Shown: piece by piece, positions 184-30,067 of the stretch
Numbering within the stretch: position 1 is the stretch's first letter
Layout: every line of letters begins with the position of its first letter
Assembly (NCBI GenBank): GCA_000708835.1
Contig: DF237150.1
Coordinates: 61,528-125,527, forward strand
DNA from: Klebsormidium nitens
Taxonomy: Eukaryota > Plantae > Klebsormidiophyceae
Reading direction: 5' to 3'
Length of the DNA stretch: 64,000 bases
The notes under the pieces: generated by a model
Databases searched by the model: none
Told to the model about the DNA's origin: nothing
What the model saw: only the letters and a program-made list of their open reading frames with translations
Program-made: the position numbers and the translations under genes

Positions 184-3100
184 ATGGTGTGGGCGGTTGT
201 GCACTTGCTGGCCGGACTTTTGCTTGCAGCTTTGTTCGACCTCTCTCTGGGCGCTGCATTCGGCCGTGATAGGTGGCCATACCCTCTGGCGCTAACATAC
301 GAGGTGCTGCTCTTGCTTAACGTGCCTGTTAACAAGAACGCTTGCTACCTGGTCAAGAATTACCTGTATTTGAGCGCCTTGGTGTCCATCATTCCAGCAA
401 TATGCCAAGAGTCTGTCCCATGGTGGTTGCCTCCCTTGCTCGCTATCCTCCTCTGTGTCCACTTACTTGGTTTCAGGAGATGGTCGGTGCGCTTCGTAAC
501 GGCAGCATTAGTTTGCGGCATTTTCCTTAAAGACAAGGCTCCACGTGCCCACTTCTTCCTGTTTTGGATTGGGCTGGGACTCGTGGACATGCTAAAACCA
601 GTTGATTCAGTCGCTGCTTTGGGCACTCTCTTAGTCCACGCAAATGTTAGCCCCCAAACGAGCAGATTGGTAGTAGCAGCATGCAGCATTGGCTGCGCAG
701 GCCTCTTGCACCTGGTGCATAATTGGGACGTCAAGGGAATGCTTGGCGAGAAGCTCGCGGGGGCGCACTGGTAAGAGTTGCTCGGTTATGCAGGATTGAG
801 ATGCTACAAGATTGCTTGTCCCTTAAAGAAAATGGAGCATAGCATTAGCTTTATTGGACGCTGTCTGCCACGTTCCTGTCTGATGCGGTTCCATGGAAAT
901 TGAAACGTGGAGTCAGTGCACGCTGCTTTGACAATACTCAGGGCACGCTGCTTTACTGGTATTCAGTTCCAAAGGTGGTTATGGCACGTTGATTTTGAGG
1001 TCTGCTTGCCCGCAGTGCCTTCTTTTCTGATCAAGAGCATCAGTTGACGGCAAAACGATGTCCTATTACATCGCTGCATGGTTCAATCTTCCCCTAAACC
1101 AGCTGACCTGCAAGATTCTTTGTCCTGGAGAGCTCGCTTGGGGATAGTCACACCTGATTGAATCCGGGGGATACGGAATGGATTCCTCGTTAATAGTCAA
1201 GCTTCCAAGCCTTGACAGATCCAACTTTGGTGATGCAGGCTACATGACGGAAAGGTCGGGAAGCTCCGGAGCATTTTCACCTTGGGGGTGGTGACACCAT
1301 GGAGCTCTGTCACCTAGATGCGGCTGCAGCAGGAGACAGCCTGGGCAGCGCTAGGCCTCTGCTTTGAAGTTTTGCATGGGCCCAAAACACGCGCGTGGAT
1401 TGCAGCCAGAGTGGAGCAAGAGAGGAGCAAGGCTGCAGAGTACCAGTTGGACTGGTGAGCAGCGGATTCAGTCTCCTCGCTGTTATGTCAGCAGCGCTTG
1501 GCTGAAGTTGTCTCCATTTCTGAGAATCCTACCTTTTATCAGTTTCGTCAGGGAATGGTAATATGCACATAAGTGCGGACAACAAACAGATTCTTACCTG
1601 CGTTACTTCAGGGTTTTTTCTTCATGCAAATGTTTGGAGCAGTTTCTCTGTCAAAAGGATAGTACATGCTCTGGCAGCCAGCAGAGGTGGCCGCCTGCAA
1701 GATATCTCTCTGATAAGAAATCTCGAAAGCGCCAACCCTTGAATTGTGTACTTCCTGTCATTTGTTGATTCCAGCTTCTTCTGCGTGCAGCTATATTCAC
1801 GCCGACAATTGTCACGAAGCGCCGAGCTTCGACCAGGACCCTGAAGACACCGAAGACCTCAGCTTTCTGTGCTCAAAAGCCAGTCTCTTTGCATTCATTC
1901 AGCGGCGCCCTCTCAGCGAGGCGTACATGGTTGAGATCTTCATTAGGAGCGAGCTGCACGTCAAAGGAATGCAATGGCAGGACGCAGTGAAAGTCTTAGC
2001 GCATCTCAGCTACCTCAGAAGCCCCAATGTGCCGTATGCGGACCGATTCTACCTTGCTCTCAAGCTGCTGAAGTGGTGCCGGTCCGCTTTGGAAAAGGAG
2101 GCGGACTCCCTGCACATGTGCGACGTGGAAGGCAGTTTTGCAGGCCTCGGAAATCTGGCAAGCGGCGACGCAAGTAAGCGCTCCAAAATTCCTTTAGATT
2201 GGCAAGAGTCTCAAGATCGGGAATCATTATCAAAGCTCCTTCTTGCTTTGCGAAACCGGTTTGGAGAACCTCTCGTTTAATTCGACTGAGGTCGTTGAGG
2301 TGCTTCTCAGTCCGAAACTGAGCTGCAAATGACGGTCTCCCCTCCTTGGAGTTGTGTTATAGAAAGATGACAGTACAGCTGGCCGGCACCAGTCCATTTA
2401 CATTTTTACAGCGGATATCAACATACAGGAAACCTGGACACATACCTCGTAAAGGTCCCTTCTTGTCCCTTCCTGATACAAGCCTATTCAAAAAGCAATC
2501 TCAAAGAAATCAATGGCAGAATATGTAGCGAAATTGACTTCAAAAGGGGTCACGTACTAGGCCCTAAAGGTCTGTTCGAGACAGTGTTAAAGATATATAC
2601 ACTGGTTGAAATTGCGTTTCCAGCTTGATGGGCGGCTTGTATTGCTAGATTGTAGGGTGGAATCGGATGAAGGTCTGATCGCATGAGTCTCAATCTGTGA
2701 TTGTCCTTGCAGAGATAGGCTTCTACTTCTCAAGCGAGCGCCTCTTCTCCATTGTCGCGGCAATCCTGAACCCGTCCCCAAGTCTAGCAGCAAGTTGCAC
2801 GCTCGCAGGAAACGAAAGCTTCCAGAACTTCGAGCAGCCCTTTGAGCACTACGACTGCGGGTACCGGAGATCAGAACTCTGCGATGCCCGGAAGAGACTC
2901 AGAGCTTCAATTGGTTCAAATTGCGCAAGAAATGAAAGAGCGTCTGCAGTTTTGCCTAGGACAATTTTGGCCGCTTTGGACGGCGAACCTTTGGGGCCGT
3001 CATTCAAGAATTGGAGAAGCTTTACATGGTCTTACGCTGTTCACTGGGCCCAGAGAACCTTAGAGACCGGTGACATTGCCGAACATCGGGAGCTCCTTCA

Positions 3101-5260
3101 GTGTTGCACGTCTTTCAGAAAGGTTCAGCAGACAATGCAAAACAAGACGAAAGAATGGATACGCAAGTATCGTGTGGGGGTCTGGTACCGCTTGCTCACG
3201 TCAGCGGTGCGCTTGATCAGCAGTCTCAGCATAGATGACATCAACCACAATTGGCTACTAGAGCAAGGGGCGCTTCAAGCCTTGAAGAAGATTCTGCAGT
3301 TCTTGCCGGCAGACAGGATGCGGAGCGCGCAGCAAGAGGCGGCGCTGTTCATCTACCGCCTCTTCGAGAATCAGAGGTAAGAACCCCCTTGTTTCAGAAG
3401 AGAAGAAGACTGCGAAGCTTCCTATGGCGTTTCTGTGTGTCGGCCCCCTGATTGGAGCGAGACACAACGTTTTTATCGACGTCTGTAATGCTTGAAGTGA
3501 TCGAACTTGCATGGTATCCCAGTCTGAGCTTGGCAGATACGGCCGAAACAAGTCTTCACTTTCGTGCTCGAAGCGTTGCATCAAGACGTGACTGGAGAGA
3601 ATCAGCAGTTGGTAAACGATTGTAGCAGTCACGTCATTTGATCCTGCGTCACATCTGGTTGATATGTTGGTAAAGACGGCACCAGACCTGCAGTAGTCAG
3701 CTCCGGCGGCTTAAGTCTTTTTTCCATTCTCATTTGCTGGCCCTCTTTTCAAAACCGCGGTTTGCTTGTGAGCTGACAGCTTCCGACCACAATTCAGCCT
3801 AACCGGAGTCGATACGTCTATCTGCGAGCATAGTCGACCCCCGAAACCTCGGTCCTTCAAAACGTGGCAAAATCATATCTTTCTTTTCAGGGTGCACGTT
3901 ATCGTCCGCCAGTCCCCGGCTTTGATGGTGACAACCGGCGAGATCATCTCCGCGCTTCGAGCCATCGACAACGACCTGTTTGGCGAGGGGTGGGGGACGC
4001 GAATTGGAACACAGCTATACGAAGAGCTCGTCGGAGGAGCGAGTCTGGACAAGAAGAGCAGTGGTGAGTCACTCTGGATAATGATAAAGGTTCAATCAAG
4101 TGGTGAGGCACTCTGGATAAAGAAGAAGGTGCAATCAAGTAGCGCGGCTCGACACAGAGAACCGGTGCTAAGAGACAGACGCATCGCTGCATTCCGGATG
4201 GAGAGATTGAAGGGTGAGATACGCGGGTTAGCTCGAAGTCTGTCTGACGTTTATGGTGATCCGAGGTCGCGGTTGAGTAGCTCCGATGTCTAAAACCCTT
4301 CTTGGTGATTCATTACATGCGAGTTTGTGATACAGCTCAGGAAGCCGTTGCTTGTTGCCATGAACACTTGAAAACGGACGGTCCAATCCTCTCCTCTTTT
4401 GAGGTGCTTTTCATCTCTTGAATGTTGCAATGGCCTCGAAGGTCTCATTCGCTCTGAAGCATCTGACATTATCTGGGTCCGACATTCACAACCTACAAAA
4501 CTCGAGTTGCCCCGGCTGTTGACTGGCTGTTCAATGACCGCAACCCGATCCCGTTCTTGTCTTTGCTCAGGGACGGACGGCCGATCTGCTCGACTCGGTA
4601 GCGCCAGCGCATCATCTTCGTCGAGGCGCCACCCGGTGAAAGGAGCGCGGCATCAGAAGGCTAGCAAGAAGAGCGTGGTAAGGGAGGTTGCCATGACCCC
4701 TTCTTTGGCTGACTTTAACGGTTTTCTTTCACGAACCAATCTCAAAGTGCCAGCACTTTGTCCGTCAAACTCAGGGAGACATTTTAGCTACACGCTGGTT
4801 ACTGTTCTCGGTCCTTCTAGGGATGTGAACAAGATCTGCCTTCGGTAAAAAATGACCAGAAAACCTTCTCGACAATGTATGATGATAGTTGTCAATCTTG
4901 GAAAGACTTCGTGCGGTCCGGGACTGTCCCAGACGACGACATGTCTGCTTGATATTGCGCGTTGCTTGAATGAGAAAAAAGGAAACGGGCTGCTTACCGA
5001 ATGAGAGACGAGAGTGCGTAATAACACCCGCCCAAGGATGCTTTGGACTGCTTATCTATATGAAGCTGAAACGTTTGACTTTTTCACTCGCTGACGGATC
5101 GTGTTGCATGCAGAAGTGTGCACGAGAGGGGTGCAGCTTGGAGCGGCAATCTGGGGTGAAGCTCAAGATCTGCGCTGGATGTAGGCAAGTTCGATATTGC
5201 TCAAAGGAGTGCCAAATAGCAGATTTCCCTTCGCACAAACTCGTTTGCAAGTCAGAATAG
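184..5260 (+). pseudogene. Copy 1 of 7-exon membrane-domain/helical/MYND-finger family; in-frame TAG in exon 2 (may be functional if exon 2 is skipped)
   Basis: Exons 184-770, 1239-1454, 1791-2173, 2713-3376, 3891-4063, 4571-4677, 5114-5260, all GT-AG, intron phases 2,2,1,2,1,0. Last exon KCAREGC..CAGCRQVRYCSKECQIADFPSHKLVC fits MYND spacing. TAG at 1315-1317 lies where paralogues have W/Y/F. Confidence 0.75.
4060..4137 (+). repeat. 39-bp tandem duplication spanning the exon-5 splice donor of copy 1
   Basis: agtggtgagtcactctggataatgataaaggttcaatca followed by agtggtgaggcactctggataaagaagaaggtgcaatca; gtgag donors at 4064 and 4103. Confidence 0.85.
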
Positions 5261-7799
5261 CAGCGCGTGAAAGCAAGTCTTGATTCGAGCGCAACAAGAT
5301 TTGTAGGGAAGAAGCAGATTCTTGCTATATGTTGGATGTTCATATGCATGATCAGTCGAAGGCAACGAACCATGACAATCTTTAAGCGGCAGAGATATCG
5401 ATCGGATATAGGGGATGTACTTTATAAGTGTACAGATTCTCCGCAGGAGCTTCAAAGCCTGTACTGAACGCCTTCCATAATAGATAGAAGATTGTACTGT
5501 TGTATTATAAATGATCAAATGCACGTCATGGCATCCCATGCAAGGCGCATGCGCATTGATATCTAGTTAGATGAGAAGTTTGCTGCGTCTATCGCAAGTG
5601 CATACACCAGAATTTCACTCTTGGAAGGTGTATTCACTAGATCCGAATTCTGCCTCCAAATTTCATGATACGTAGTCTGTTTGAGTCACAGCTAGGGTGA
5701 CAAGCCAGTGACCTTGCAGGCGACGCTGAGTCATATCCGAGCAATTCGAATCCGCGTGACCATTGTCGCATCAATTCACGTGACCAATTAAGCGTCCATC
5801 AATTGACACTTTCATCTGGCACATATCCAGTGACTTCAAAGCCCTTGAAGTTTGTTGAAGCACCAACGCGGATCGTCTGCGCTCACTTGATAATGTATAT
5901 GTTCAATTGAATTATGGGTAAGTGATACGTCATTACCAAGTTCTCGAAAAAGTCACGTGACATGCCGCTACTGCGGCAGCTCGCCAAGCACATGAACAAC
6001 AAAGCCTCAGATTTAAGAGATTGGCGTTCAAATGGAGGGCGATCGTCACTATCAATTCCGGCTCTTCCCGTAATCGGTCTGGCAAAGTCACGTATGTGCT
6101 TGCCCCGCCGCGCGCCAGCCGGATCAAGCTGCTGGCCGCGCTAGCTGTTCAGGCTATATTGTGCATAATATCATTGGACCGCTGCACCGCACCAACATTC
6201 ATGATTCGATTGTTTCAAATCAGCAAGCAAAGTCGATACTCGATCGGCCTCGCGAGGAAGCGACCTCATTACATTACTGAATGTCGGAAGTTGCATCGAG
6301 AAAGCGTCATGCATGCATAAGTCCAGGTTGTTAAATGCTATCCTCATGTCTGTGTATACATGAATGGTAAGGGTCAACGTTTAAATCGACACGCTTATAC
6401 CTCTAAGATTTCATCAGCCTGTCCTCTATGTACAATTCAAAGAGCGTGATGCTCTCGCTTTCTTTGAGGCGCACCGGTGAATTGAGTCCTGTACTGCGGC
6501 CGTCCTTTCACCCTGGGCCCGTTAAACCAAACATTTGATCCTCTGACTCGTGCACAACTGTACTTATACTCCAAACACTAGGACTCAAATGTTTCTGGGC
6601 AGGTCATTACGGCGAACTTACGTGCACGCAGTCAAAATTCTTTGAGAGACGGCTCAAGTCTACCTGTCAGTCGCTAGCTCTCACATGTACACCGCCATAT
6701 ATGTCTGCGTAGCCATACACGTTGTTTGCTCTGGGATTGCTCGGTGCCCTATGGAAGTCTTTCTCATGGCTTGCAAACAATTCGATGCGAAGCAAAGTCC
6801 GCTTTCTGACACTCTTTTGAGCAGTACCGGACCTGCCGACAGCGGGCGCATGTTTTCAACTTGGCAGCTGTTTGACCCTCCACGTTGCAGCCGTCTCGTG
6901 CACACGTCTGCACAGAAGACGATCGAATCCGACTCTTTGATTTCTAAGTCGGCCGTGAAGCTCTGTCCATAGCCTTTTGAACGAGTCACTGGATTGGTCT
7001 GTCACAAGAGTCATGACGAGTATTACGCGGGGCATGTGCTTCTAGGGGTTTCGCTTTCTACTTTAGCTGTTTTACATTCATGAGCAAACTCACAGCCATG
7101 TGAAAGCATTTGGACCCAGCAGAATTTATCGACCGCCTTTTCATGTGGCCACGTAGCTGGTATCTACCCGAAAAGGCGTTTGCATAACGTCGCTTTTGCA
7201 TACATCCTTTACACACAAGAAACGCGTATCGAACCTGTTTCGCAGGAATGTCTGGATGATCGCAAACCAAGGAAACAATACAGCGACGAGAACCGACTTG
7301 TTCGATCGCCGGACAGGTGCACACAAGATGATCGGTAAAGATTGATCGTACACTTGGCTTGCCGCTCCTTCTCTTGTGAGCATCCCCCTGAACGGTGCCG
7401 TCCGGCGGTGAAGGCCGGCCGGCGCTCGCCTCGAAACAAAAGCGAGCGTCCGTATCTGCAAAAGGGAGAGCAGCGGTAGGATCAGTGCTCACAGGTGGAC
7501 GGACAATAGGGACCTGCCAAAGCACGGGGTGTTAGGTTGCACAAGATCCTACACTACTTGGAAAACATAAGCTCGTGTGTGTTCATGAAGGTGAACAAAA
7601 GGCTGCTACGTCAGGGAGTCTTCGCAAGCGCCACTCATAGGGAAGTCAGATAACTATTCAGGACCTCATTCACGAAGCGCCAACGTTCCGAAGAACATCC
7701 AGACCCATGCATCTCAAAGCGCCTCTAAATCTCTTCGCCTCCACTGTTTGCCATTCCGCCATCCACTTTTCCATATAAAGAAGCTCATTCATTGACCCT

Positions 7800-8145
7800 G
7801 TCCAAAAAGGCGTCCGGAAAGGCGTCTAAAAGAGTGTCTGCAAAGTCGTCCGCAAGAGTGTCTGGAAACTCGTCCGGAGGGAAGTCCGAGGAAGAAACAG
7901 AGCAAAGGAGGCAGAGCTGGCGGAGGAAGAATGGGCGCCCGGAACGGCTTCCCGGACGTCCGAAATAGCGTCCGAAAGGGCGTCCGCAAGAGTGACTAAT
8001 TCGTCCAAAAGCGAGTCTAAGGAAGAAACAGAGGAAAGAAAGCAGAGTTGGCTGGCGGAGGAAGACTAGACGCTTGGAGCTGCTTCCCAAGCGTCCGAAA
8101 AAGCGTCCGTAGAAGCGTCCCAAGAAGCGTCCGCTGGAGGGTCCA
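7800..8145. repeat. 12-bp-period (c/t)gtc(c/t)-core array with a ~130-bp higher-order duplication, in intron 5 of copy 2
   Basis: cgtccggaaagg cgtctaaaagag tgtctgcaaagt cgtccgcaagag...; blocks starting gaagaaacagag..ctggcggaggaag occur near 7891 and 8021. Confidence 0.8.
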
Positions 8146-11100
8146 CTGGGGACCGTTTCAGAAGCCGGTCAGGATCTTAAAGCGTCCAAGGCCTGCCGGT
8201 TGTATCTATGCAACGTCTCACCTTCCGCTGCTTTGAAGAGCTCTTCGTACAGTTGGAGCCCCATTCGTTGTCCCCAGCCTTCGTCAAAAAGGTCGCTGTC
8301 GATGGAGACAAGCTCGGCGACAATCTCTCGAAGAAGGCCCGTCAGAACGGGAGACTCGCCAATGATCCTGTGCACTCTGTCAAAAGTACGGATTGGGTTA
8401 GTCTCAAGGAGCTCGTATATTCCAGAGATTATTTCCTGGGGGTGCCCCTTCTTGATTTTTATTTCAGTGGGGCGCCCCTGCTTGAGCTCTGTAACTTCAA
8501 GAAGTACAGACTCACAATAAGAGACGCATACTGGCTGTCGAATGCAGACCGCACGTTTTGCAAGCAACAAGGCGTCGCGCAGGCCGTTGTGCAGGTGTTA
8601 AAATCAAATAATGTCAACCGGAAGGCGGAATTCGCTGCTTCATCGTGTCCGATCTACGAACATCTGGGGCAAACTTCATTGGTAAGAGGAAGCAGGTTCC
8701 GAAGCTCTTTGAATCCAACAGGCATGATACTAGAGCCGCTCTGAGACTACGTTGATTCGAAATTGCATAAGACGTCTCCCAATCTGACACTACCATAATG
8801 ATTTAAAGTACCCCAAGAATCTTTGAACACTGTTTTAGCTGAGTCAAATAAGCGGCGGTTCCTTACGCGCGGTTCTCGAAGAGCCGGTAGACAAATAGCG
8901 CCGCCTCTTGGTGCCCGCTCCGCATCCTGTCCGCCGGCAGATACTGCAGAATCTTCCTCACGGCTTGCAGCGCGCCTTGCTTCAGCATCCACTCATGATT
9001 AGAAGCCTCTGTGCTTAGACTGCTCATCAGCCGCAGAGCCGCGGTCAGCAATCGGTACCACACCCCGATCGGAAATCTAGCTACGAGAGGAGACGTGGCG
9101 GCGTTTCCCGGCGGATCAAACGCTCCGAAGAGGTGGCGGATCGAGTACCAGGCCAGGAGCATTCTGAAAGTGAGCGAGTCTTGACTCGACAAGCTGGCGG
9201 TCATAGGCGTTTGCAGCTCCACGGGCAAGTCCGCCCGGGGGAGTGGCCTTAGAGGAACTTCGGTGCGATCAGGCCTCGCTGTTGTTGACGCTCTGACTCT
9301 CCTGCGTGTCTCGCTGAGGTCCCACTCCGCGTAGCCGGTGTCACTGTGCTCGAAGTGGTCTTCGAAATACAAGAACTCCTTGGCGGCCTTGTTGAAAATG
9401 CTCGTCGCGAGGAGCGCGGACGGGTTGAGGAGAGCGGCGAGGATGGAGAACAGGCGCTCGTTTTTCAGGAAAGCCCCCGTGACTGCAAATACGACATTGG
9501 AGTAGAGCTATTGTCACTGACTGCGAGTTCTGTTGATTTTTTCCATTGAAGAAAGAACACAACAGAGTGCGTTGAAGCTCATCTCGCCCAAAAATGCAGT
9601 CGTGACCGCGAAATTACGTCTTTCAAGCTTTGCTATACTTGATATCGCAACCGTTCTTTCAACCCTAGAGAGCGGCTTGCCTGTACCTTCCCGGTCCGTC
9701 TACTCTACCGCCAGTGACAAGTCGATCAGAAGAGATTTTACGCGCAAGCAAGTCTCTGTCTTCGCCTCGACACGTCATTTACTGGAGAGATCACAATCGC
9801 TAAGATAATTCGAGACGCTGCTCCGAGGCCGCAAGGTAAATCTGTGGTTTAGGTGACATAGATCTGTGGACCGGGTGACCAATAGGTTTGATAAGGGAAT
9901 TGATAACCTTGGGGAGCCAAGCGCGCACATCGTCGGGTGTAAGTTCTTTAACCAAGTCCAATCATGCGGACTGCATACTGCCTAAATGTCAAGAGTAAGC
10001 TTTCGAGGTTTACCTGAGTCGCCGCTCGCCAAGTTCGCCAGGCCTCCGAGGCCCACCTTCAGATCGCGCACGTCAGACGTTTCCCCAACCTCCACGTGTC
10101 GCTTCTCAACGGCACTCCGACAGAGATTCACGAGCTGACGCGCAAGACGCAGACGCAACGGGCGGTCTAGATCGAGAGCTTTCACGAAGCTCAAAGGTGC
10201 AAGTGCCTCCACTGCCATCCGCTTTTGGGCCATCGCACGTTCTTCCACTTTGCCTTGATCAACACTTGCGATCAGAAATTCTCCGACCGAACGCTTCTGG
10301 GGGACTAGTTGGCCTCTGAATGAGCAAAGGAACTACAAGTCTGCCATGTCGTCAGAGTTCTGGTCGAAGTAGGGAGCCTGCCCGGTTTTGTCGGCGCGAA
10401 TGTAGCTGGATGCAAAGGAAAAAACGCGTCACTGAGCCATCACAGTAGCATGCACGGATAGTCGGGATGTCGGAGCGATTGTAAAGTTCTCTGAGCCTTT
10501 CGGCCTCAGCGTGATCAGGACTTCCTTCGTACCGTACAGTATCCTTGTCACTATTCATTTGGCCAAAGCCGAAAGGCTACCGTATTGACACAAATTCCAG
10601 AGGACCATAACACTGGTTAGGGCGAGATTCAAAGGCCCATCAAAGCAAGCAGACAGAACAGATTGTGTGTTCCGATGAGAGTCAACAACCATTTTGCCCG
10701 GGCAGCTATTCAGACCTCGGATAGCCTTCAAAGAGAGACCCTTTACGAAGGCACCCACTCAAGAACTGATTCATTCATTTGACGAGAGCTTCAAAGCTCC
10801 TCACCAGTCCAACTGGAATTCAGCGGCCTTCCGCTTCTCCTGCTCCACTCTCGTTGCGATCCAATTGCATGCGTTGGGTGAGCAACGAGTAAGGCCAATG
10901 ACCGTTGCTGACGTTTCGTTGTACAGCCGCGGCCATGTGAGTGTGCTCCAGACCATATCAGCACACAGCCGGAGTTGCCTGCATAACCAGCAGCACTGCA
11001 TTCATAGCGGTATCCTGGCATACTTCAATGTTACTGGAGAGCTTGCGGTTGGCCGCACGCAGCATGGAATATTGCTGGACTTTATAACAATGAAGGCGGT

Positions 11101-11446
11101 ATATAGGTGTGCTGCGAATCGGTTATTCTTTTCCGCCTTGTTCAGTCTGTTCAAATTTCATCTGAGAATCTAGCATAGGAGGTGGTGGTCATAAGGAACT
11201 GAAAAACAACAACTCAAAGCAGATGATCATATGCACCGTCCTGGTCTCTTGCTGAGCTCTAAGACCAATCAGTTGCAGAACAGCTAAGACTCTTTTCAAA
11301 TTTTCTGCGGGTACTGTGAACGTCCAGCAAGCATATGGACCTCAACGCAAAAGTTTGAGGCGGCCAGTTTGAGCAGCTATGCCACAGGGTTCTTAGAAAC
11401 TAGAAGGAGGAACACATACAATAATGAATATGATTTAGCAAACACG

Positions 11447-11490
11447 AAGTCATCGCAACAGCAGCCATAAGTCATCGCAACAGCAGCCAT
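11447..11490. repeat. Perfect 22-bp tandem duplication in intron 1 of copy 2
   Basis: aagtcatcgcaacagcagccat x2. Confidence 0.9.
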
Positions 11491-12718
11491 TTTCTCCTTT
11501 ACTTCTGGCTTTCAGCGCTATTTGTAAGCCAGGCTTTGCACCACTTTACATCGGCTCAATCTTCATGGAAGGGGCAGTCTACAAATACCTCAGCCAGGTC
11601 CCTTCGTTGAACTTTCAATATGCATGCCTCTTCTTGCTGTGCTAACAATGCTTGGCGGAGAGACAAGCGTGGAGAGGTCAAAGATGCAGCAGATCAAGAC
11701 CGCATACGAAGCCTGTCAAACCGTCACCTAATCTGCTCTTAGCTCTTCGAAAGATTCCATAATGCATAAACAGGGCACAGCTTTAGCTCCTTCTCAAAAT
11801 TTTCGCAAAGCAGATTGTCCTCACCTGTCTCCCCAGGTGCCTGTGCTAAGATACCCCTCAGCAAACAGGTGGACCACCACAGATATCGAAGCATAAATCC
11901 CAAAAAGCATCAGGGCTGCCTCGGCTCTGTCTAGGCTGTGTGCACCTAGATGCAGTAGTAGAGTGCCAAGGAGAGCCGGATCGAAGGGTCCCATCTGTCG
12001 GTGTTGTAAAGCTAACCAATTGGTTATGAAGCAAACGCGGTCGCTTATACTATTGTTTCCGAGGTACGAAATGTAGAAGAGCCCCAATGCCCCCACAGCT
12101 ACTAATGCGCAAATAGTGTCTCCTGAAGTACGATAAGAGGAGAATTCAGACAAGAGAAGTCGCTATCTGCAGCCACCAAGGAGCAAATAGAAGAGCAGGA
12201 GGAAGGAGAATTTCCAGATTCTGCGCGTGCAGGTACCAGTACATGAGGTGCAGAATGTTCTGGTGGACTTGCAGGTTCAAAGCTTTGAGCACCTTGTAGA
12301 TGCACAGCACTGGGGCAGGCCAAGCTTCGCAGCCAAGAACAAAGGCTATGATCAGGTCTGCCAGCGGCCAAAGAGCAAACAAAAGCAGCTTCCGCAGCAT
12401 TCTGCGCCCCATTTTTCAACGGCGCCTTCCTGCAATTTGACAAGCTATGTCCTAGGCGCTGGTCCTGAGTTCATTCTTCTCTGAAGATCTGATCCCTCTT
12501 GCCGGCGCTTGCATTGGTTCGAAAGCTCACTCCGACTCGGATCGGCTGCTCATTAAAGCCTCGTCAACTACTGTAGCGAGGTGAAAGGCGCTTCTTCTCC
12601 GCAACGATTCAGAGCCCATTCAGAGTGCCTTCATGGCGCCTCGATCGCTCCGTAAGCAGGGTGGACTGAGCGACTCAGCGACTCCTGCCAGCACTGTCGG
12701 CGGCCCATGATCGGATCG

Positions 12719-12898: not shown

Positions 12899-13003
12899 TC
12901 CGGCGTAGTCTAGTCTGGTTAGGATACCTGGCTTTCAAGTCAGCGAGGCGAAGCCCTCGAACGAAATGCCCAGGCGACCCGGGTTCGAGTCCCGGCGTCG
13001 GAA
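12899..13003 (+). tRNA. tRNA-Glu(UUC) with 31-nt intron (12938-12968)
   Basis: Acceptor stem tccggcg/cgtcgga, anticodon stem cctgg/ccagg, loop ct-TTC-a[intron]c, T arm ccggg-ttcgagt-cccgg; AT-rich TATA-like tract and caa upstream, T6 downstream. Confidence 0.95.
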
Positions 13004-13009
13004 TTTTTT
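13004..13009 (+). terminator. Pol III oligo-T terminator of tRNA-Glu(UUC)
   Basis: tttttt immediately after the discriminator base. Confidence 0.85.
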
Positions 13010-17607: not shown

Positions 17608-18345
17608 AAGCTTTTGTGTCTATTTCCGCCAGATCTGGCCCGGCCAACGGATGAAATAGTTTGCTTTACATGCCTTCCTGATAATTGATCTTAATCAGCC
17701 ACGCGCAGGCTCAGGCATGCACGTCCGAGTCGCTCCTTCTTAAGCACGTGGATCAATAAGCTGACGGCCTCGATTCTATATGCTTTTTGATTGAACTTGG
17801 CACACTGAGTGATATTGAGTTGACAGAGTGCATGGACGCATTTGATGGGTCTGGTACGGTCACATAGGACAGCACTTGTGGGTGCGCATTCATGCCTTAT
17901 ACCATCGGTCCGACATATGTGTGTCACATATGGTATGTGAATTCATGCATGGCTGGCCATGCACGTCAAGCTTACTGTGTTTCCGTACTTCAGCCGTATA
18001 GGATCATTAATCTTGCTTAACCGATCGAACGGATACATAACGGCATAGGTCCATGCGGGCATCAGTACGCAGGGGCCTAGCTGGCCGTTTACGAACTTCA
18101 GAAAGCCTAGAGCTCCTCGACAACATGTTTGTGAACGAGCTATCGAATGGTTAGCTAGTGTTCTGGGTTTCTATGCAGCTATCAAATCCGCGTAGTCTGC
18201 AAGCTCAGTCCTTCCAACTACTTTTGCATGATGTTCGAGAGTGTTTGATTTCGAGCTTGGAATGTGCTTTGCCCTCTCAGAATTGCACAATTGGAGGTCA
18301 AGCTGAAGATCTGCTGGGCCTCCAGTATCCCGGCCAGGCTCCGTG

Positions 18346-18383
18346 ACACGTGTCGAACTTCGACTGGCCGAACCAAGGGCACG
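18346..18383 (+). promoter_or_regulatory. Conserved promoter module of copy 3 (G-box/ABRE-like)
   Basis: acacgtgtcgaacttcgactggccgaaccaagggcacg, ~330 bp upstream of ATG 18674. Confidence 0.7.
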
Positions 18384-18673
18384 CGGTCGCACTCAGCGAT
18401 ATGATTACGTCGAAGCGTTAGCGTATCTAGGGGCGGTGTTTTCGAGAATTGCTACATATGCTGCGGCTTTTTTGGGGAAGAGGCAATGCGCCGACGAGTT
18501 TTGGAGCAGCTGAGCAGGACGACTGCGAAATGCCACTGCCAGGAGCGGACAAGAAGGATCTCCGAGAGATCACTGCTCAAGAGAAACTCACTTGGAGAAG
18601 AAACTGATAAGGTTCCTGTGGAGCACGAAGCTTGTAAGCCTGTCAACTGTCTGCCAGTCGAGGCGCTGATCAC

Positions 18674-21600
18674 ATGATGGCGCGCTCAATGGTGCGGAGG
18701 CTGGCCCTTCTGGCGCTCTGCCTGCTGGCAGACCATGTCGTGGCAAGCCTTCTTGGCGCCGAAGCTTGGCCCGCCCCAGTGCTGTTCACTTATAAAGCGC
18801 TCCGCATGCTAGACCTGCAAGTCCACCAGAACATTCTGTACCTTGTGTACGTGTACCTGCACGTAAGGCTGGGAGCTCTGTTGATAGTTGACAAGCCGTA
18901 TCTCTTTCTCGCTCCATGGTGGCAGCATACTGCCTCTCTCCTTTTATTTTTCTTCCTCCCCTTATTCAGCAGCTTCAATGAAAACGTTTGGCGCGTAGCG
19001 GTGATGGCAGCGGGGATCGTGTACATTAGGAGCTATAGCAATCGCACCCGCTTTTTGACCACCTGGTTGGGTTTAATAGGCTACCAACAGATAGGTCCTC
19101 TTGACCCTGCTCTCCTTGGCACCCTCCTACTGCACTTGTGTGTCTACCACCTCAGGAAAACGGAGCCAGTCTTGATGCTTCTTGCAATCTATGTCGGGGT
19201 CTCTTGGCTCGTCCATCTTTTCGCCAAGGGTTTCTTCAGCACAGGCACCGAATGGGGAGACAGGTAGGAAACATCTGCAATGCATTGACACAGGAAGATA
19301 TAGTGCCCCTTTCTAGGATGTTGAGGTGAAGGAAAATGTCTTTCAGCAGGTTTCGGGGTCTTGACAGGACATGTATGTCTATGCAGACTAGGCCGCCATT
19401 CTCAAGGCTACGATGAGGTCTCGTCTTCCAACTTGTACTTGTCCATCTAGAATGAGTTCAGCCAGAAGATGAGGCAGAAGTCAGAAATTGGATAAAGATA
19501 CAAATGCCCCTTCCTTGAGATTTGGGCCACTTTGAAGCTTCATGGCTTCTAGAAGCTCGAAGAAAACATTTCTTTGAAATGCAATACCGTGTGCTGAACA
19601 AGCATCCAGTCTACTTCGTTCCTCCCCACTTACTTTGATGCTCGCTGTCTGACAAAGGCACCAAACGTTAACCATGAGAACAAGCTGCGGGTGAAGTAGC
19701 AGTAGCCGATATGTAAGGGTCTAATCTGCAGCAGTCAGCTAACCATAAGAATTTTAACGGTCCTTTTGGACCTCCTTGTAGAGACCACCATCATTGGGTC
19801 TCTAATTGGATCTGATCAAAACGCCGAAAAGGCAATCCTCGTTTTGCAGAGGTTCTGTGCGTGCACTAAGAGGACGGGTTTCAAACAAGACGAAATGAAC
19901 TTGACTCACACTTTGAGTCACCGATCTTGCAGGCTACTCAAGCATCATGCTGACACAATCTGGAGCACGGTAACATATTTCCGGTTGTTTTTCGATACGG
20001 CATACGCGCTTATGGGCATCTTTTGCGGTTGGCCTAGCACCCGCACCTGGATTGCAAAGAGAGTGGAGCAAGAGACCCGGAAAGCCGCTGCATATCAACT
20101 GGACTGGTGAGGAAAGTCCTAATCACTCTGTAACGGTACCGAGTGACTTTCCGTCTATCAACGCTACTGTAATGGTTGAGTGCTTGAGAGTTGACCTTCC
20201 CATGCTACAGTTGTTCAAAGTTGCTCCGGAAAACGTATCCTTGATCGACCTTGATTAGGACCGAAGCTCTCTAGAACCGGACCCCTCTTTTATGAGCAGC
20301 GTGTTATGACCAGTGCGCTTGCATTTGGTAACTCTCAAATGCTATCTCTAGTTCTCGTGTCCTGGACGGATGTTGTCGCAGTTGTGTACGCATCGACGCT
20401 GAAATGCAGACGGGTACACCCCCAGTCATATGAGGGTCAAGGAGCACAACCTTAAATATCTTATGTACCTGGAGATAAAGTAAGGTTCTCAGCCTACCTC
20501 TGCAAGAGCTTGTAGAAAGACACGTCAGGAGAATAACACACGAAAAGTTCCGATTGACTTTAGAAGAAAGAGTCGAATAACAAGCAGTGTTCGAGCGTCC
20601 AATTGTTCGTCCAAAGTTTTTGGACGCTTCATAACCTCTTATGTCTTGTTGCGTCCAGCTACATTCGCGCCGACAAGACCAGGCAGCCCCCTTACTTCGA
20701 CCAGAACACCAAAGACACCCTAGACTTGGAGGTTCTTTGCGCTCGATGCATCCCTCTCGAATCCGAAAAGCGCACCGTCAGAGAATTCTTGATCTCCGCC
20801 GCTTCCCGGGGTGCATTCATCAGTGGTACCCGCACGTTCATTGACAGCGAGACGGCACGAGAGTTGTTGGCGCATCTGAGCTTTGTCGAGAGGCAAGATG
20901 GAGATTCGGCGGGGCGCTCTAATCTCGCGCAAGAGTTCCTACGAATATGTCGGCATACGGTTGCAGAGCTACAGGTGCACGATTTGGAGGTGGGTCTTGG
21001 AGGCCTGGCGAATCTAGTGGGAGGGGACCCAGGTACGTCTTGCGAAGTCGAAAATGTCACTATGAAGCTCCAAATTTTCGATCTGTCCATTCAAACATAT
21101 GCAAGAATGAGGTCTGGGGCTTGCTTACTCGAAGCTGCATTCTCTACGTGGACACGTTCTCGTGCTAGTATTTAGGATGTGCTCGTCGTCTTTAGGATTG
21201 ATAGCTCACGGCCAACATTAAGAAATATATCTTCGAGAATGACCTACGAAGTCACGTCATGCGACCCTATTGCGCGGCTGCGTTTTCGGGCGACCGAGAT
21301 GGATCTGGAAACGGTTTCGCTTCACATTAACATTTGTTTCCGCTCACAGCGTTTCACTTTCAGAAGGCAAGGCAAAATCATAGACGGTTTCTGGGTACTC
21401 TTTGCAGTCACGGGATCCCTCTTGCGGAACGAGCGCCTGTTCTCCATCCTCGGCGGTGTCATAGACCCTTCGGCCGTTCTTGCGACCAGCTTCGTCAAGA
21501 AGGCTGCAAAGGAAATGCAATACATCGAGGAACATTTTGAACGGAGTGACCCCGGTTATGCAGAAGGGGACCTTCCCAAGAAACGCAGAGAAGTCAGGGG

Positions 21601-23748
21601 GCCAACAAACTCGGGGACCCAACAGAACTCCCAGAACAGAGCCCCCCCGCACTGACATGCCCCCGGAGTTCCAGAGGATTTTGACCGACACCTTCCTACG
21701 TGATATCTCGATCCAATTCGAATGGCTTTTCATGTGGTACGCAGTCCGCAAGCACCCCGGTGCCTTTGACTCGCCGGGAGTCGCGGCCGCGTCGCACCGC
21801 GACGCGAGGTTTTGGCTCGGGGTTTGGTACCGGTCGCTTACAGCGGCGCTGCGCCTCATCAGCAGTCTGAGCATGGAAGTTTCTAACCATGCGTGGTTGT
21901 TAGAGCAAGGCGCGCTGCAAGCCGTGAAGCAGATCCTGCTGTTTCTGCCGGCGGACAGGATGCGGAGCGGGCACCAAGAGGCGGCGCTGTTCATCTACCG
22001 CCTCTTCGAGAACGACAGGTAAGAATCTACCGGTTGCCTCACCCAAATATAGACAACAGATTGAGTAATTTCGGTGTTGATTTGCCGGACATGTAAGGCA
22101 GGTCAGGGGTAAATAATCTGCAAAACTACTCAGCTAGTCTTCCCGTCGTTCGTTATGGAGTCTCGAACCCTCCTGCTTTTGACCGAAAGATTTGAGCGGA
22201 CGTTCGTACATTGATTTCAATCAACTTTTACTGGCAGTCTATCGCGTCTGAGACGGTGCGTTCCGCGGAACATATTCCTGCAGAACATTGCTCGCGAGAC
22301 GCCTCGTTGCTCGAACACGTGCGATTCGTTTGGTTGATTTGAAAGTTCCAGACGGGTTCCAGATCAGTCTCGAAGCTCAAGAAGGAGCGCCCCAGAGCAC
22401 AGAAAATCAGAGGATCGAACTAATCCGACGCACTTCGCTTCCACAGAGTGCACAGAAGCATCAGCCAGTCTCCGGTTTTGACGGGCCTCTCTCGCGAGAT
22501 CGTGGCCCAGCTTGTCTCCATTGACGGCGACCTTTTCGGCGAGGGCTGGGGCGAACGGATAGGAATACCGCTGTACAGACAGCTCTTCTTAACTGCGGAA
22601 GGTGAGAATCATATCCAAGTATAAAGCAGGAGACAAAGCTTATGTCTTCACCGGAAAAGCTTGTTTAAAAGCTGGTGCATTAATGAGACTGAAATGCTTC
22701 TGTAGATGTCACAGACGAACGGAATGAACGTGCTGTACGTGCTGTGTTCGACAGCTCCAAAGTGGACCACCTCAAGTGCTCATTAACGCGTGTCCTGTGA
22801 TCAAACACGCATTGGGGCTTCGAACATGATACAAGTAAAGCCAGCGTCTTAGTTCACCCTTCTGTACCTCGCGATTTTCCCCGCAGCCTCTCTCCCAAAG
22901 TCAGACGGACAAGGCTCGTAGATTCTTGAGACATTGAAACGGCCCCTTCAACTGAGCGAACTCCAAAGGCCGTCCTTCCGGGAGTGCTCACTCACCTATT
23001 GCTCCTTTTCTCATCAGAGACGGACGTTCAATCTAGATCTGGCGTGAGATCTAATCAGGACGGGAGTGCAGGCTCGCCTTCCTCGCCGGACAGCACACCG
23101 CCGGAGGGGGAAGCTCGGCAGAGGAGAAGCAGAAGGACAAAGGTAGACAAACTCCTTCGCGGCGGGCTTACACGGTGTTTTCTTCCGGGAATTATGACAA
23201 CACGGTTCTCGCCTCATTTACCGTAAAATGTACTTTCTGAAGGTTCTCACTGTGCACAGTAACGGAGCAGACCAGAATACGACAGCTTGACATCCTGTTT
23301 ACACGGTCTTATAAGGACGCGATAACGCGAGCGCCTTTTCAATGGCCTCAAGCTGGTTGTGGTTAGACAACAAACGCGAAGAGAGGGTCCGCTTGGTCTA
23401 GATGCTTTGCAAAAAGTTGATTTCTCTTTTCGAGGTCAAAAGCTAAAGGGGAAGAAATGAGCCTCTCAAACTGGAGCAGACCTTCCCAGTTTCGCTTTAG
23501 AAACTCTTTTGATTGGACCCCAACCTTGTCTGGCCATCTCTCAATGACTGCAACCGACAGCTCTGAAGTGCTCTTCGATAACTTCAACACCCTTTTATGT
23601 GCAGACGTGTTCACGAGACGGTCGTAACGTGGAAGGCCAGACCGGAACGAGGTTGAAGAAATGCGCCGGCTGTAGGCAAGCCCGTTACTGTTCTAAAGAG
23701 TGCCAGAAAGCGGACTTCCCTTCGCATAAAAGTTTTTGCAAGACTTGA
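18674..23748 (+). pseudogene. Copy 3 of membrane/MYND family; frameshift in exon 4 at a C7 run (possibly an assembly error)
   Basis: Exons 18674-19263, 19933-20106, 20659-21032, 21408-22018, 22447-22601, 23018-23142, 23605-23748. Exon 4 is 611 nt versus 664/616/622 in the paralogues (all 1 mod 3). Second MYND Cys reads Arg (TCSRDGRNV). Confidence 0.75.
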
Positions 23749-24710
23749 GCACGCCCTGTATAAGTGTGACGCACCTTCTGCAGACTCGTCCAATCGAGAT
23801 TATTAAAGAGGTGCTCTGAAAACCAGAAACCCTAGACAAAAGGCATTCTAATCAAGCTAAGGCCACACCCATTCTCTTCAGACGTTGCCAGTGAGTACTA
23901 GTTGCACCAGATGTCTGTTTGGTTTTACAAATTCAGTCGCAAAGGCAAGTTGCGTTCGCCAGATGTTTGTTCGACGCCCCGTCCGCTCTACTTTTATGGA
24001 GGGGACCGCGGAACATTGAAAGACACTGGACGAGTTGCTGATGAGGAACTCGTACGCGTTCTAGCTGCCCGCTCGAAACCTCTGGCACACCTGACACATA
24101 TAGTTCGTATCACCAAACGCTACTGGCAGCATTCCACGAATTATGATTCCGAGCACGCAATACTCTGTTGAAGTGGCAGACATGGCTACGCTGAAGCAAG
24201 AAAGGCTAGCTGCAAGCGCGGTGATAGAGACCTTCCAATTTTGTGCCGCCTGACATTATGGTTGCGGAATGAAAAGCAAGAGGCGGCCCGGCCTTCGTCT
24301 CTGGCCTCTTCGATCAATCAACAACTCGCGATCCAAAGTCATGATAATAACCATGTTTACTTATTTCACCCTACCGTGCAATAGGAGTCGGAAAGCCAGT
24401 ATCAGTTAGCAGACGTGTCCACGTTATCTGGAGGCCGGGTCATACATGTGTGGCCCCAGTTTGTCAGTTCGTTCGTCCCCGCAGCTGATGGTGCTGATTG
24501 GTCTGAGATTTTTGTTTATGCATGGATGTTATCAAACCCTTCTTCCAGTAGGCTAGCGCTTCCTTCGCGCAATTCTTAATTGTTTTCTCAACTGATTGTC
24601 TGTTCTGCTTAACACATTATAACGCCTCCTCGAGACCGTAAAATTGGAATGTCATTGAAACTTTGGCCAAATTTGGGCCTTCGAAGCTCGAGGTTCTGCC
24701 GTTATCCGGG

Positions 24711-24744
24711 ACACGTGTCGAAATTTAGCCAAACCAAGCGCACG
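24711..24744 (+). promoter_or_regulatory. Conserved promoter module of copy 4 (G-box/ABRE-like)
   Basis: acacgtgtcgaaatttagccaaaccaagcgcacg, ~235 bp upstream of ATG 24947. Confidence 0.7.
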
Positions 24745-24946
24745 GAGTCGCAATGACAATCGTTTCTCCGAGGCGTCAGATCGACTCACCTGCCTAAAGC
24801 CTGGAAGATGAAAGAAGCGGTGGTCTGGAGTCGGAGCGTTTTGAGCAGCTGAATGCTTTCGCCTTCGAGAAGCGAGGGTGCGCAAGGCTGATTAGATGAG
24901 GAAATTGTACCAGACTGACTTGCAAACAGCAGGCGCTGCTGATCAA

Positions 24947-27900
24947 ATGGCATGGGGAAGACCATTGCTGCAGAGGCTGGCCCTGCTGGCTCTCTGTTTT
25001 TTTGCAGACCTGTTTCTAGCCTTTCTTCTTGGCAGCGAAGCTTGGCCTATCCCGATGCTCCTCGTTTACAAGGTTCTTAGCATGTTGGACCTGCAAGTCG
25101 ACCAGAACATTCTGCACGTTGTAGATTGGTACCTGTACGGGCAAGCCGTGGCGACACTTCTTTTCGCTCTCTGTTGGCTGCGCATGGCACTGTTGCTCGT
25201 CTTCATCGTTCCATTCTCTCGCTTCGTAAAAGGCAAACTTTGGCGCGTAGTCATAGGAGCAGTGGGCTTCTTCTACCTAGGAAACACAGGCGAGCGCACG
25301 AGCTTCATGACCAAGTGGATCGCCTTAGGACTACAACACAAGGGTCGCTTCGACCCTGCTCTCCTTGGCACGCTGCTGGTTCGCTTGTGTGCATGCCGCA
25401 TCAAGAAAGCCAAGCCAGTCCTGACTCCTCTTGCAATATCTGCTTGGGTCTGCTCGGTGCTCCATCTGTTCGCTAAGGGGTACATAAGCACAGGCATTTG
25501 GGGAGACAGGTGAGGACGAGCTGCTTTGCAAGAAGTGGCAAGGAAACTCGGCGGTGCTGAAAAAGAGTCTCCTTCTGGACGCTCCCTGCCCTGAAGCATA
25601 TAGCAGAGACGTCACACAGCAGCTTTGACAGTCCCTATTATTGTCTCTTGTTATTATAGTATCATCCGAATGGCTCTTGTGATAACCACGGTTACCTAGC
25701 AAACTCGCTCAGCGAAGTTACCGGCAGGAGGTTAAAACCAAGGGAATTTTACAAAAAGAAGTGAAGACAATCGCAGAATGCCCTCTTCTTGAAGATTGGG
25801 CCGACGTAAGGCCTGGCTTACAGTTGCTTTAAGTCAGGACCTGTCTGCTTTTGGGATGCATCTTCAATGCAGTGTATCGATACTGATCAATTGCGTCTTT
25901 CTTCGGTTATCTTCCATGAAAGTTTTCTAAGATAGCTGCCTCTTTCCACGGTGTGCGCACTCAACATACTGGTTCAACCTACCTGCGACAGTGTGAAGCT
26001 ACTCTTCAAAGTCCTCTTTCTGGCAGTTTCCCAAAAACTAGAGCGTTTCTTAAAAGCATGAATCTCTGCTTGAGGATTATACGTTCTTTTGTAGTACCCG
26101 TAGCAGTCGCTTGTCTTCGGTCAATCGAACTGAGTGACGAAAATAGGAGAAGTTTTCATTCTACAAATAATGTCGTCCTCGCTTTCGGCAAATCAGGCAC
26201 CCTTCTCAGACACGACAGGATAAGAAGGTAAACTGAACATGAAGTTGGTAATGCAGGCAACTCAGGCTCGCTGGTGAATTCCTTTGGACGAGTCTCACAT
26301 TCGCTCGGCTGTACTCCATAACGATGGGCACGGTCATCGACCTCGCCTGCGTCTGGCCCAACGGCCGCACTTGGATTGCAGAAAGAGTGGAGCAGGAGAA
26401 GCGTAAGGTTGCTGAAAATCACTTGGACTGGTGAGCAGAGTAGTCCTGTAACTCGGATCAAGGTCCGTACAAAGCTAACAGAATATGCTTGAGTCAATGC
26501 CTCCTTTTACTTGTTGAAAGTAGCTGCCCCGAACTGGACGCAATTGAATTCAAAATGAGTCGGTGAACGAGACTTTCCTAAGGACCAGTGCTACGTGTTC
26601 AGTGTGCCAGGATGTGAGAAGCGTCGATCCTTAGCCTGCTTTAGGGTCTCCTCCCCTAATGACGGCAGTAATTGTCTTCATGTGAACCTGGACCCATAAT
26701 CTTCGACGTCAATACCCCTTGAAAGATTGGTGTCTTGAATTGCTCCGTAAAGGGGACTGTTCGCTTAACCTGCATCGGTTGTCAAAGGAGGATCTCAGAC
26801 ACCTTTTGAAGAATGAAGGGTCGCATGAAGCGGAAATGTTCTTAAAATTCTCTCATCCGTTCGAAGTTGTTCGAGAGTTCGGTCAGTCTTCTCCACCGTT
26901 GCGTCCAGCTACGTTCGGGCTGATAGAACCGGCCAAGCCCCCTGTTTCGAGCACAAGGCCGACGACACCGCCGACTTGGAGTTCTTATGCTCAGTACGGG
27001 TTCCTTTGGAATTGTTCCCGACGCACTCCATCAAAGAAGCCTTGATAGCCGCCGCACTTGGGGGCGAAGTCATCAGCGGTACACCAATCAACAAGGAGAC
27101 GGCAGTAGAGGCGTTAGCACATCTGAGCTTCTTGAAGAGTCTCGATCTGAAATCATCAGAGCGCTCGTGTCTGGCTCGTCAGCTCGTAAAGCAGTGTCGG
27201 GGCACCGTTGAGAAGCGACACGTGGCGGCTGCGAAAACAGTCAACGTGGACGAGCTGAAGGTGGGCCTCGAAGGCCTGGCGAATCTGGCAAGAGACGACC
27301 CGGGTAAGGGCTTGCATGCTCGAAACAGCCTCTTAAGATGCTGCTGAAAGTGTTGCTCATCGATTATCTACAAGGAAGATGGTCGAGGCGTTCTACTGTT
27401 CTGCTGAGACCTCTAATTCGAACTTTTGCTATTTTTTGAGCAGCCGAGATCATTAGATCAAAGCGCTGTCAAAGGCTGGTTGAACGGATGCCGTTTTCCA
27501 AATCAAGCAAGCTTTAGAAGCGCTCAGAATGCCCATTGAGTCTCCAAGCTTTTTCTACTCGTGCATTGGTGAAACCTCGCTTGACTGAATGAGTCTCAAA
27601 AGATGGGTATCGGATGATTATGAGCTGCTTCTCGAAGGTTCCTCTCAAGAGATGACGAGCGGACATTCGAGCCCGCGAACAGCTTACAGGAACTCAAAAT
27701 AATCTTCGGTCGTGCAGTCATTGGCTCGCTCCTGAAAAGCGAGCGCCTCTTCTCCATCCTCGCGCGTATCGCAGACCCGCCCGCGCCTCTTGCGGCCAGC
27801 TTATTGAAGGAGGCCGGCAAGGAAGTCCAGGACTTCGAGGAGATCTTCGAGAAAAGTGACACCGGGTATGCAGAGAGGGACCTTCCGAAAAGACGCCAAG

Positions 27901-30067
27901 AGCTTAGGGAGTCTACAGATTGGAGGCCGGCTCGCAACCAGATTCAGACAAGGATGATTCATCTGGCTGAGTTGCCCTCAGAGTTTCAGAGGCGTTCAAC
28001 GGTCAACTTCATACGTGACTCGGAGATATCGGCGCGCTTAGCGCTTCTACTGACCTGGCACACGTTTTGCAATAAACACGTGGCGTTTCAACCGCCGGGG
28101 CATGCGGCCACGTCATACTGCGACCCAAGGTTCTGGCTCGGGGTGTGGTACCGGTTGCTTACAGCAGCACTGCGCCTCATCAGCAGTCTGAGCACAGAAT
28201 CCTCTAACCATGAGTGGCTGCTGGAGCAAGGGGCGCTGCAAGCCGTGAAGCAGAGTCTTCAGTTCCTGCCGGCGGACAGAATGCGGAGCGGGCACCAAGA
28301 GGCGGCGCTCTTCGTCTACCGGCTATTCGAGAACCGCGCGTAAGCAACCGCCGCTTGCTTTACCCGGATCTGCAAGTCCCTCAAAAATTCTTCGAAGATC
28401 CTCATTCGGGTTTCACGTCGGGGGACAGGTCCTGGTGTGTGACGTGAAGACAATTGCACAGCGACTCTTATGGTCTGCTTCTTTAGCAAACGAGTATCGA
28501 TCATGTGTGCTTTTGCGCACGAACTTTGTTCCAGATGCTCTGATCAGGCCAACAAATTCGCTGACTTTGAAACGGCTCGATTGGCACACCTGGGTTATGT
28601 TCATGAGAAAAAGTCTTCTTGCTCATCCTTCTGCAGATTGCTGGTACTTCCAAAGAGGTGATACTTTCTGGAGTCACGAAGCCCAAAGATGATCAACTTC
28701 ATCACCCACTCCTCCCTGACCCATTTTGTTTCTGCTTGAATCCGCAGGGTTCATAGGATCATCAGCGGATCTTCACTTTTCACGGGGCTTCTTTGCGAGA
28801 TCGTGGCCAAGCTTGTCTCATCGACAGCGATCTTTTCGGCGAAGGTTGGGGGCAGCGGATAGGGAGTCAGCTGTTCCAAAAGCTTCTCCAGGCAGCGGAG
28901 GGTAAGACATGACAAAGACAGAAGTGAGAAGCCGAGTGCAAACCGCATGCAGTCAACATAGAGCCTCGTAGCTGGGCATGAGGAGATTGTGAAACTCGGT
29001 TAGGCAGATAGCAGATACGAACCGAGTCTCCAGCACTCGAGAGGCTTAGGATTGAATCAGCTTCGTGGGGATTGGCACCTTAACCAAGTTTGGAATTTGT
29101 CAACGGTACCTGAACAACACACGTGGCGACTGCGTCAAAGCCCAACGGAAGAACTCTCAGCTCGTTTTCACATCCTTCCGAACATTACAGTACACATCTG
29201 CGAGCTTTTGCTGTTCAGGTCGTCACAGCTTGGAGGATCTCAGTACTACCCGAATATTTTCTTTTTGTGAGAAGGCTCCGTTCTCCAGGAATGATCTAGG
29301 GAGCTTCTTGACTGATACTCCTTTCTTGTCAGATACGGACGCCGGATGTGCGCCGGAAGCCGCCTCTAGCTCACCGCCTTCCCCGATTGCCAGCCCGGCG
29401 AGCGATGCTCGGCAAAGGAAAGCCAGCCGGCGAAAGGTACGAGCGCGAAGCTGTCTACTACCATCAACTGATCAATGCATATACTGCCAAATGAGACGAT
29501 TCGGTTTTCGAGGTCTTCGACCGTCTTTCATTTCTGAGACTTCTTGCACGGCGCATTGTTGCGGACTAGGTTTCGTAGCTGGACATCCTGTGCGAAAAAG
29601 ATCAAAAGGAAAAGTATGCTTTATTACGCGACAGATTGCGAGCGCGCTCAAGTATTCCAGCTTGATATGATTGTTTCGGCCTAAAGATCGGAGGGGTCTG
29701 CTGGCTACAGATGCTCCAAAAATGGCAGTCAAATCGCCTATTCTGGTACAATCTTTGACGACTGAAGGACGTTCTCCAGAAGCAGAAGTTCTCTAGACTT
29801 CGACTTAGAGACTTTTCCAAACTCATGAACCCAGTTTGCTCGCTCATTGGCCAGCTCTCGTTCAACTAGAGCGGACGGATCCCAGCCGCTCTCTATTAAG
29901 GGGTCGGTTCTTCCTTCGTGCAGACGTGTGCACGAGACGGCTGCAACGTGGAGGGTGAATCGGACGCAAAGTTGAAGATCTGTGCAGGCTGTAGAAAGGC
30001 TCGCTACTGCTCAAGAGAGTGCCAAAAAGCGGACTACCCTAACCATAAAATCGTTTGCAAGCCGTAA
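24947..30067 (+). pseudogene. Copy 4 of membrane/MYND family; 1-nt deletion in exon 5
   Basis: Exons 24947-25509, 26257-26430, 26909-27303, 27718-28339, 28748-28901, 29333-29436, 29924-30067 (TCARDGC..CAGCRKARYCSRECQKADYPNHKIVC). Exon 5 is 154 nt versus 155 in copies 2 and 3. Confidence 0.75.

Follow-up and report, generated by a model that had tools for sequence, protein, structure and literature searches.

A 64,000-nucleotide (nt) stretch of the Klebsormidium nitens genome (the window; assembly GCA_000708835.1, scaffold DF237150.1, window position 1 being approximately record position 61528) contains four of the five copies of a gene family found at a single K. nitens locus, the fifth (copy 0) lying just upstream. 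The intact form of these genes encodes a protein of 720–760 amino acids (aa), in which a hydrophobic N-terminal domain is followed by an armadillo (ARM) solenoid, a disordered basic linker and a C-terminal MYND finger. The family proteins evolve fast yet are constrained, with purifying selection acting through most of the time since the Klebsormidium species split, yet all full copies that we sampled, in the K. nitens strain and in three other samples, have been broken recently and independently, each by a private mutation. Such fresh, private breakage in all copies points to a benefit that is conditional or to an activity that is costly. We suggest, as a plausible reading that falls somewhat short of an even chance, that the intact protein is a membrane-tethered, Mub1-like adaptor that is conditionally useful or costly, and whose null alleles are hence common.

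Architecture of the encoded protein

Exon-level tblastn searches (E 1e-6 to 1e-70, exons 1–5 and 7) recovered four chains of homologous blocks, copy 1 at 184–5260 (+), copy 2 at 6764–12412 (−), copy 3 at 18674–23748 (+) and copy 4 at 24947–30067 (+), exactly as a first-pass annotation of the window had delineated them; the linker exon 6 is hardly alignable between copies. Every window copy consists of seven GT–AG exons (718–758 codons) with intron phases of 2,2,1,2,1,0, the agreement in phase being again as annotated. The motifs quoted at that stage are consensus sequences; copy 1, for instance, has YIHAD and copy 4 YVRAD. In copy 1 (758 codons, + strand), exon 1 (184–770; grand average of hydropathy (GRAVY) 0.90) encodes the hydrophobic multi-helix domain and exon 2 (1239–1454) long helices that run into the ARM core, which is encoded by exon 3 (1791–2173), exon 4 (2713–3376), with a variable middle loop and a last third that is the most conserved, and exon 5 (3891–4063), where the core ends. 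Exon 6 (4571–4677) encodes a Ser/Arg/Lys-rich linker, of low predicted confidence (pLDDT) in a paralogue model, and exon 7 (5114–5260) the MYND finger.

The finger proposed in the first-pass annotation was identified in exon 7 by Pfam zf-MYND (PF01753, E 2e-11), with 44 bits against a cut-off of 22.7 in copy 1 (E 1.7e-11) and copy 4 (29924–30067, +; E 2.4e-11). Exons 1–5 gave no significant Pfam match, the Pfam Arm repeats did not match the core sequence at E 0.5, an NCBIfam search returned no match, and a PDB sequence search matched nothing outside the finger, which alone matched 2dan (E 0.71). Structures were predicted for public database proteins P0012 and P0010, which exon-level alignments relate to the copies. 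The predicted core is an alpha-solenoid that matched solved ARM structures in the fold search, giving the region previously described only as helical an armadillo-repeat fold. Ranks 1, 3 and 4 were ARM domains of SARM1/TIR-1 (8–13% identity); ARMC8, plakophilin and designed ARM proteins tied with SARM1. The nearest structure in the Atlas was an unnamed, mostly chordate cluster of 462-aa MYND proteins, with template-modelling (TM) scores of 0.36/0.44, both below 0.5; this cluster could be ZMYND10.

The exon 1 domain (approximately 190 aa) has a GRAVY of 0.75–0.90 in the window copies, with three to four segments passing a strict hydropathy threshold, and was predicted as eight helices in a low-confidence model; we infer that it is a multi-pass membrane anchor. 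It matched no Pfam family and no Atlas feature, fold searches with exons 1–2 returned no match, a profile search, which reaches only proteins of similar length, recovered family members only, and the domain is not a repeat of the exon 4 core. The domain thus has no known family or fold, and the membrane–ARM–MYND order had no counterpart in any of the searches run.

Sequence evidence indicates that this order is encoded, as the first-pass annotation had assumed, by one gene rather than two. In each copy that allowed a check, those from other samples included, exon 1 lies ahead of exon 2 and its donor is phase 2. The exon 1 tree recovers the same orthologue pairs and main groups as the core tree, and public gene models join exon 1 to exon 2 for copies 0, 3 and 4. 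Exon 1 is itself under purifying selection, with non-synonymous divergence (dN) over pooled synonymous divergence (dS) of 0.43 (interval 0.37–0.49). On the shared donor, the matching trees and this selection, we rejected exon 1 as a separate gene.

Private lesions in genes with a history of purifying selection

Scanning 1.84 billion representatives with an exon 4 profile (HMMER) returned nine matches, all members of this family; they lie on contigs L001/L008 and L002 (SRR23617307), L003 (ERZ26165376), L004/L005 (GCA_043761985.1, SRR23617210) and L007 (ERR10899985). JGI metagenomes, IMG/VR, GTDB and BFVD contained no match. As far as sequence searches reach, these results support a lineage-restricted family, in line with the lineage-specific origin proposed earlier. 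L001/L008 is syntenic with the window, carrying a copy 4 orthologue followed by an HCF244-like gene and the start of an FtsH-like gene, and on L002 the orthologues of copies 0 and 1 likewise stand head to head; we infer that SRR23617307 holds a second Klebsormidium species. Copies 2, 3 and 4 form a younger clade with the L001 copies. Gene order and orientation are altered in this subgroup, which must therefore have continued to undergo duplication, loss or conversion.

Each window copy carries at least one disabling change. Copy 1 has an in-frame TAG in exon 2 (1315–1317, +), where its orthologue has TGG, directly followed by an ATG. Copy 2 (−) has a TGA (12146–12148) and a frameshift (approximately 12100–12110) in exon 1 and a TAG in exon 3 (10333–10335), copy 3 a 5-nt deletion in exon 4 (approximately 21605–21625, +), and copy 4 a 1-nt deletion in exon 5 (28818–28821, +). 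Copy 0 has lost 8 nt of exon 1, so that the frequent disablement noted before is in fact complete across these five copies. Elsewhere, the second L001 copy has a frameshift in exon 1 and a stop in exon 3, and the third a 2-nt deletion and a stop in exon 1 and a 1-nt insertion in exon 4. Exon 3 is hit in both L002 copies (deletions of 7 nt and 1 nt) and in the L003 and L007 copies (frameshifts). The lesion call for L003, a 1x long-read contig, is less reliable; most of exon 1 is missing from L007, and the contig end truncates the second L002 copy inside exon 7. Orthologues share no lesion. Only two copies, both partial, are free of visible stops or frameshifts: the first L001 copy, represented by its 3′ end, and the L004 copy, which comprises exons 3–7, with no exon 2 within 1.2 kilobases (kb) upstream and one MYND cysteine replaced.

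Ten of ten counted copies being broken places the broken fraction above 0.74 at 95%; seven have a single lesion each and none is lesion-free (Poisson probability approximately 0.08). The metagenome copies were retrieved through an open exon 4, which could not favour broken genes. In copy 1, 4.4% of random changes create a stop, and neutral drift over a branch of 0.2 would yield approximately 20 stops, plus frameshifts, whereas one to three lesions correspond to approximately 0.005–0.02 (stop expectation computed, frameshift rate assumed at 1 per 12 substitutions; an intron indel rate of approximately 40 per kb was inflated by alignment noise and excluded as a neutral expectation). The genes therefore died within the last few percent of each branch.

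Three orthologue pairs gave dN/dS of 0.46 (dS 0.51), 0.41 (dS 0.41) and 0.32 (dS 0.57), and their bootstrap intervals all end below 0.6. The neighbouring HCF244-like gene, intact in both species, served as a control (dS 0.42, dN 0.004). The similar dS dates the three lineages to the species split or earlier, and family proteins evolved 40–60 times faster than this neighbour. The rapid turnover previously suggested is thus confined to the copy 2/3/4 subgroup, while three copies retain cross-species orthologues at about housekeeping-neighbour dS. By region, dN/dS was 0.11 in the MYND finger, 0.13 in the last third of exon 4, 0.3–0.5 in the rest of the core, 0.56 in the linker and highest, 0.72 (0.59–0.86), in the middle loop of exon 4. 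In pairwise counting over the three pairs, no region exceeded 1, which weakens the immune-type interpretation of the first-pass annotation.

Possible function and competing explanations

Both MYND fingers and ARM grooves bind peptides, and the dynein-arm assembly factor ZMYND10/BLU combines a helical body with a C-terminal MYND finger. Mub1 is not known to have an N-terminal membrane domain. The fungal Mub1/SamB proteins (Saccharomyces cerevisiae and Schizosaccharomyces pombe Mub1) share with the Klebsormidium protein an ARM-type helical domain, disordered stretches, a near-C-terminal MYND finger, the lack of a catalytic domain (PMC8645331, PMC12505455) and a size close to that of its soluble part; the family has the ARM-then-MYND layout by which Mub1/SamB are defined (PMC8645331). 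In Mub1, this combination makes the protein a substrate adaptor for the Ubr2 ligase (PMC8645331, PMC12505455). Unlike the Klebsormidium family, Mub1 is a conserved gene, and ZMYND10, a cytoplasmic protein (PMC5895051), is conserved across ciliated eukaryotes. Searches with the exon 4 profile and with residues 1–450 of P0009 returned only this family and so revealed no Mub1 homology over the ARM domain, no direct pairwise comparison with Mub1 having been made. Because no Mub1 homology was found outside the finger, we assign the family to neither Mub1 nor ZMYND10 despite its Mub1-like layout. The claim of an unrecognised architecture accordingly stands for the full order, for which the searches found no described family, but not for the soluble part, which is recognisable as ARM plus MYND. 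Volvocine algae also have expanded, lineage-specific MYND-finger orthogroups of no known function (PMC8226300), but the exon 4 profile scan matched none of them, and the passage dealing with them describes neither a membrane domain nor universal disablement. Literature on MYND with Klebsormidium, algal expansion or immunity yielded nothing on this family, and we did not find the all-copies-freshly-broken pattern described.

As a membrane-tethered counterpart of Mub1, the protein might act as a non-enzymatic adaptor. The hydrophobic domain would anchor it by multiple passes, and the ARM groove and MYND finger, the two most conserved parts, would bind partners and clients, which could thereby be brought to a ubiquitin ligase or chaperone at the membrane. 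If the gene is useful under some conditions only, or is costly, null alleles would keep arising and become common in clonal lineages, and intact alleles would persist somewhere in the population.

An immune or self/non-self sensor is unlikely. Its ARM domain would sense a ligand or foreign protein, as in SARM1, and its membrane domain would signal or kill, so that active alleles are costly and inactivation is selected when no enemy is present. The SARM1/TIR-1 ranks, the fast protein evolution, the prevalence of single lesions and the variable exon 4 loop favour such a sensor, and the locus, a tandem cluster with frequent pseudogenes, resembles birth-and-death loci. Yet SARM1 shares its score with other ARM proteins, dN/dS does not exceed 1 in any region, and the five copies occupy one locus, three of their lineages being stable across species. 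Pfam detected only the MYND finger after the ARM domain, with no SARM1-type SAM or TIR domain, and no NB-ARC or known pore-forming domain was found. More doubtful still is its specific form, an undescribed membrane–ARM–MYND protein serving Klebsormidium as sensor or executor in self/non-self or pathogen recognition, with costly active alleles and loss so repeatedly selected that nearly all sampled genomes hold freshly broken copies only. Relaxed selection, through a life stage or condition (such as zoospores or sex) recently dropped by several Klebsormidium lineages, with the copies now decaying in parallel, also seems unlikely. A ZMYND10-like co-chaperone origin would fit this reading, which is favoured by the about equally small lesion depth of all copies, the lack of a transcript-derived relative in the protein collection and the nearest Atlas cluster, possibly ZMYND10; however, that match is below TM 0.5, and loss would have to be near-simultaneous across lineages at dS of 0.4 or more. 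Should relaxed selection be the only cause, the family would be a small orphan family of an ordinary kind that is decaying.

It is improbable that the lesions are not fully lethal, with re-initiation or alternative splicing giving a membrane protein and a separate soluble ARM–MYND protein: the ATG after the copy 1 stop and the annotated open ARM–MYND frames of copies 0 and 1 (629 and 536 aa) would suit this, whereas most other copies are hit within the ARM core (exons 3–5) at unshared positions. Sequencing or assembly errors in intact genes are very improbable; they could account for single-base indels, as in copy 4 and part of the metagenome copies, and for the 1x contig, but errors do not typically take the form of 5-, 7- or 8-nt deletions or of substitution stops, the pattern recurs in several independent assemblies and the neighbour gene carries no lesion in either species, and on these grounds we rejected them. 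Transposon or viral cargo, or long-dead relics, would explain tandem, mixed-orientation, uniformly disabled copies but is scarcely credible given that six spliceosomal introns are conserved, that the genes occupy orthologous positions in the two species and that GTDB, BFVD, IMG/VR and the JGI metagenomes gave no match; the orthologue dN/dS and the neighbour-gene dS comparison largely refute it. Beyond the adaptor proposal, the stronger point is evolutionary, in that selection held the genes across a species split and yet all full copies sampled carry fresh, private lesions. The host is an early-diverging streptophyte, a group in which defence and non-self recognition are little known, and the family offers a defined locus for strain comparison.

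Gene models and surroundings of the locus

The exons of copy 2 lie at 12412–11825, 10978–10805, 10405–10014, 9482–8867, 8376–8222, 7455–7352 and 6907–6764 (−), those of copy 3 at 18674–19263, 19933–20106, 20659–21032, 21408–22018, 22447–22601, 23018–23142 and 23605–23748 (+), and those of copy 4 at 24947–25509, 26257–26430, 26909–27303, 27718–28339, 28748–28901, 29333–29436 and 29924–30067 (+). Copy 0 (KFL_002010070; L006:9631–15193), on the opposite strand to copy 1, forms a head-to-head pair with it across a 1.2-kb gap of Ns. Among the annotated proteins of the genome, the exon 4 profile recovered first KFL_002010080 (GAQ84692.1; part of copy 1, its model starting after the stop), KFL_002010100 (part of copy 2) and KFL_002010120 (5′ part of copy 3); KFL_002010070 and KFL_002010135 were found next. 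All lie on DF237150.1, at this one locus. KFL_002010135 (749 aa, 21732–28862) is a chimeric model that fuses the 3′ half of copy 3 with most of copy 4; the other models are hypothetical fragments, and none unites membrane domain, ARM core and MYND finger. The exon 1 open reading frames of the K. nitens strain had no exact match in the protein collection.

Intron 5 of copy 2 (7823–8125) contains a diverged direct repeat of approximately 170 base pairs, into which KFL_002010100 extends. Intron 4 of copy 0 (L006:13170–13520) and of its orthologue (L002:10120–10480) contains, in both species, serial partial duplicates of the exon 5 acceptor and first codons. A more distant copy (L007:2604–2982) has exons 5–7 fused in one open frame, with two introns absent and a shorter linker, and a short relic resembling the end of exon 4 lies between two full copies (L001:8460–8520), perhaps the trace of a further lost copy. 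L003 joins bacterial genes (Rho, ABC transporter; 1–4439) to the algal gene (6140–10798) and is likely a chimeric single long read; L004 (GCA_043761985.1, JAYUNF010000003.1) carries an intron-bearing, algal-type family gene in an assembly whose gene calls are bacterial in style, and may represent eukaryotic DNA contaminating a metagenome bin. Copies 2 and 3 flank an intron-containing tRNA (12899–13003; Rfam 52 bits, probably Glu-TTC), missed by ARAGORN, and a gene (13257–17608) that we take, from its motifs, to be Tam41-like. The HCF244-like gene (31900–35800, −) and the FtsH-like gene (37818–42687, +) are syntenic in L008.
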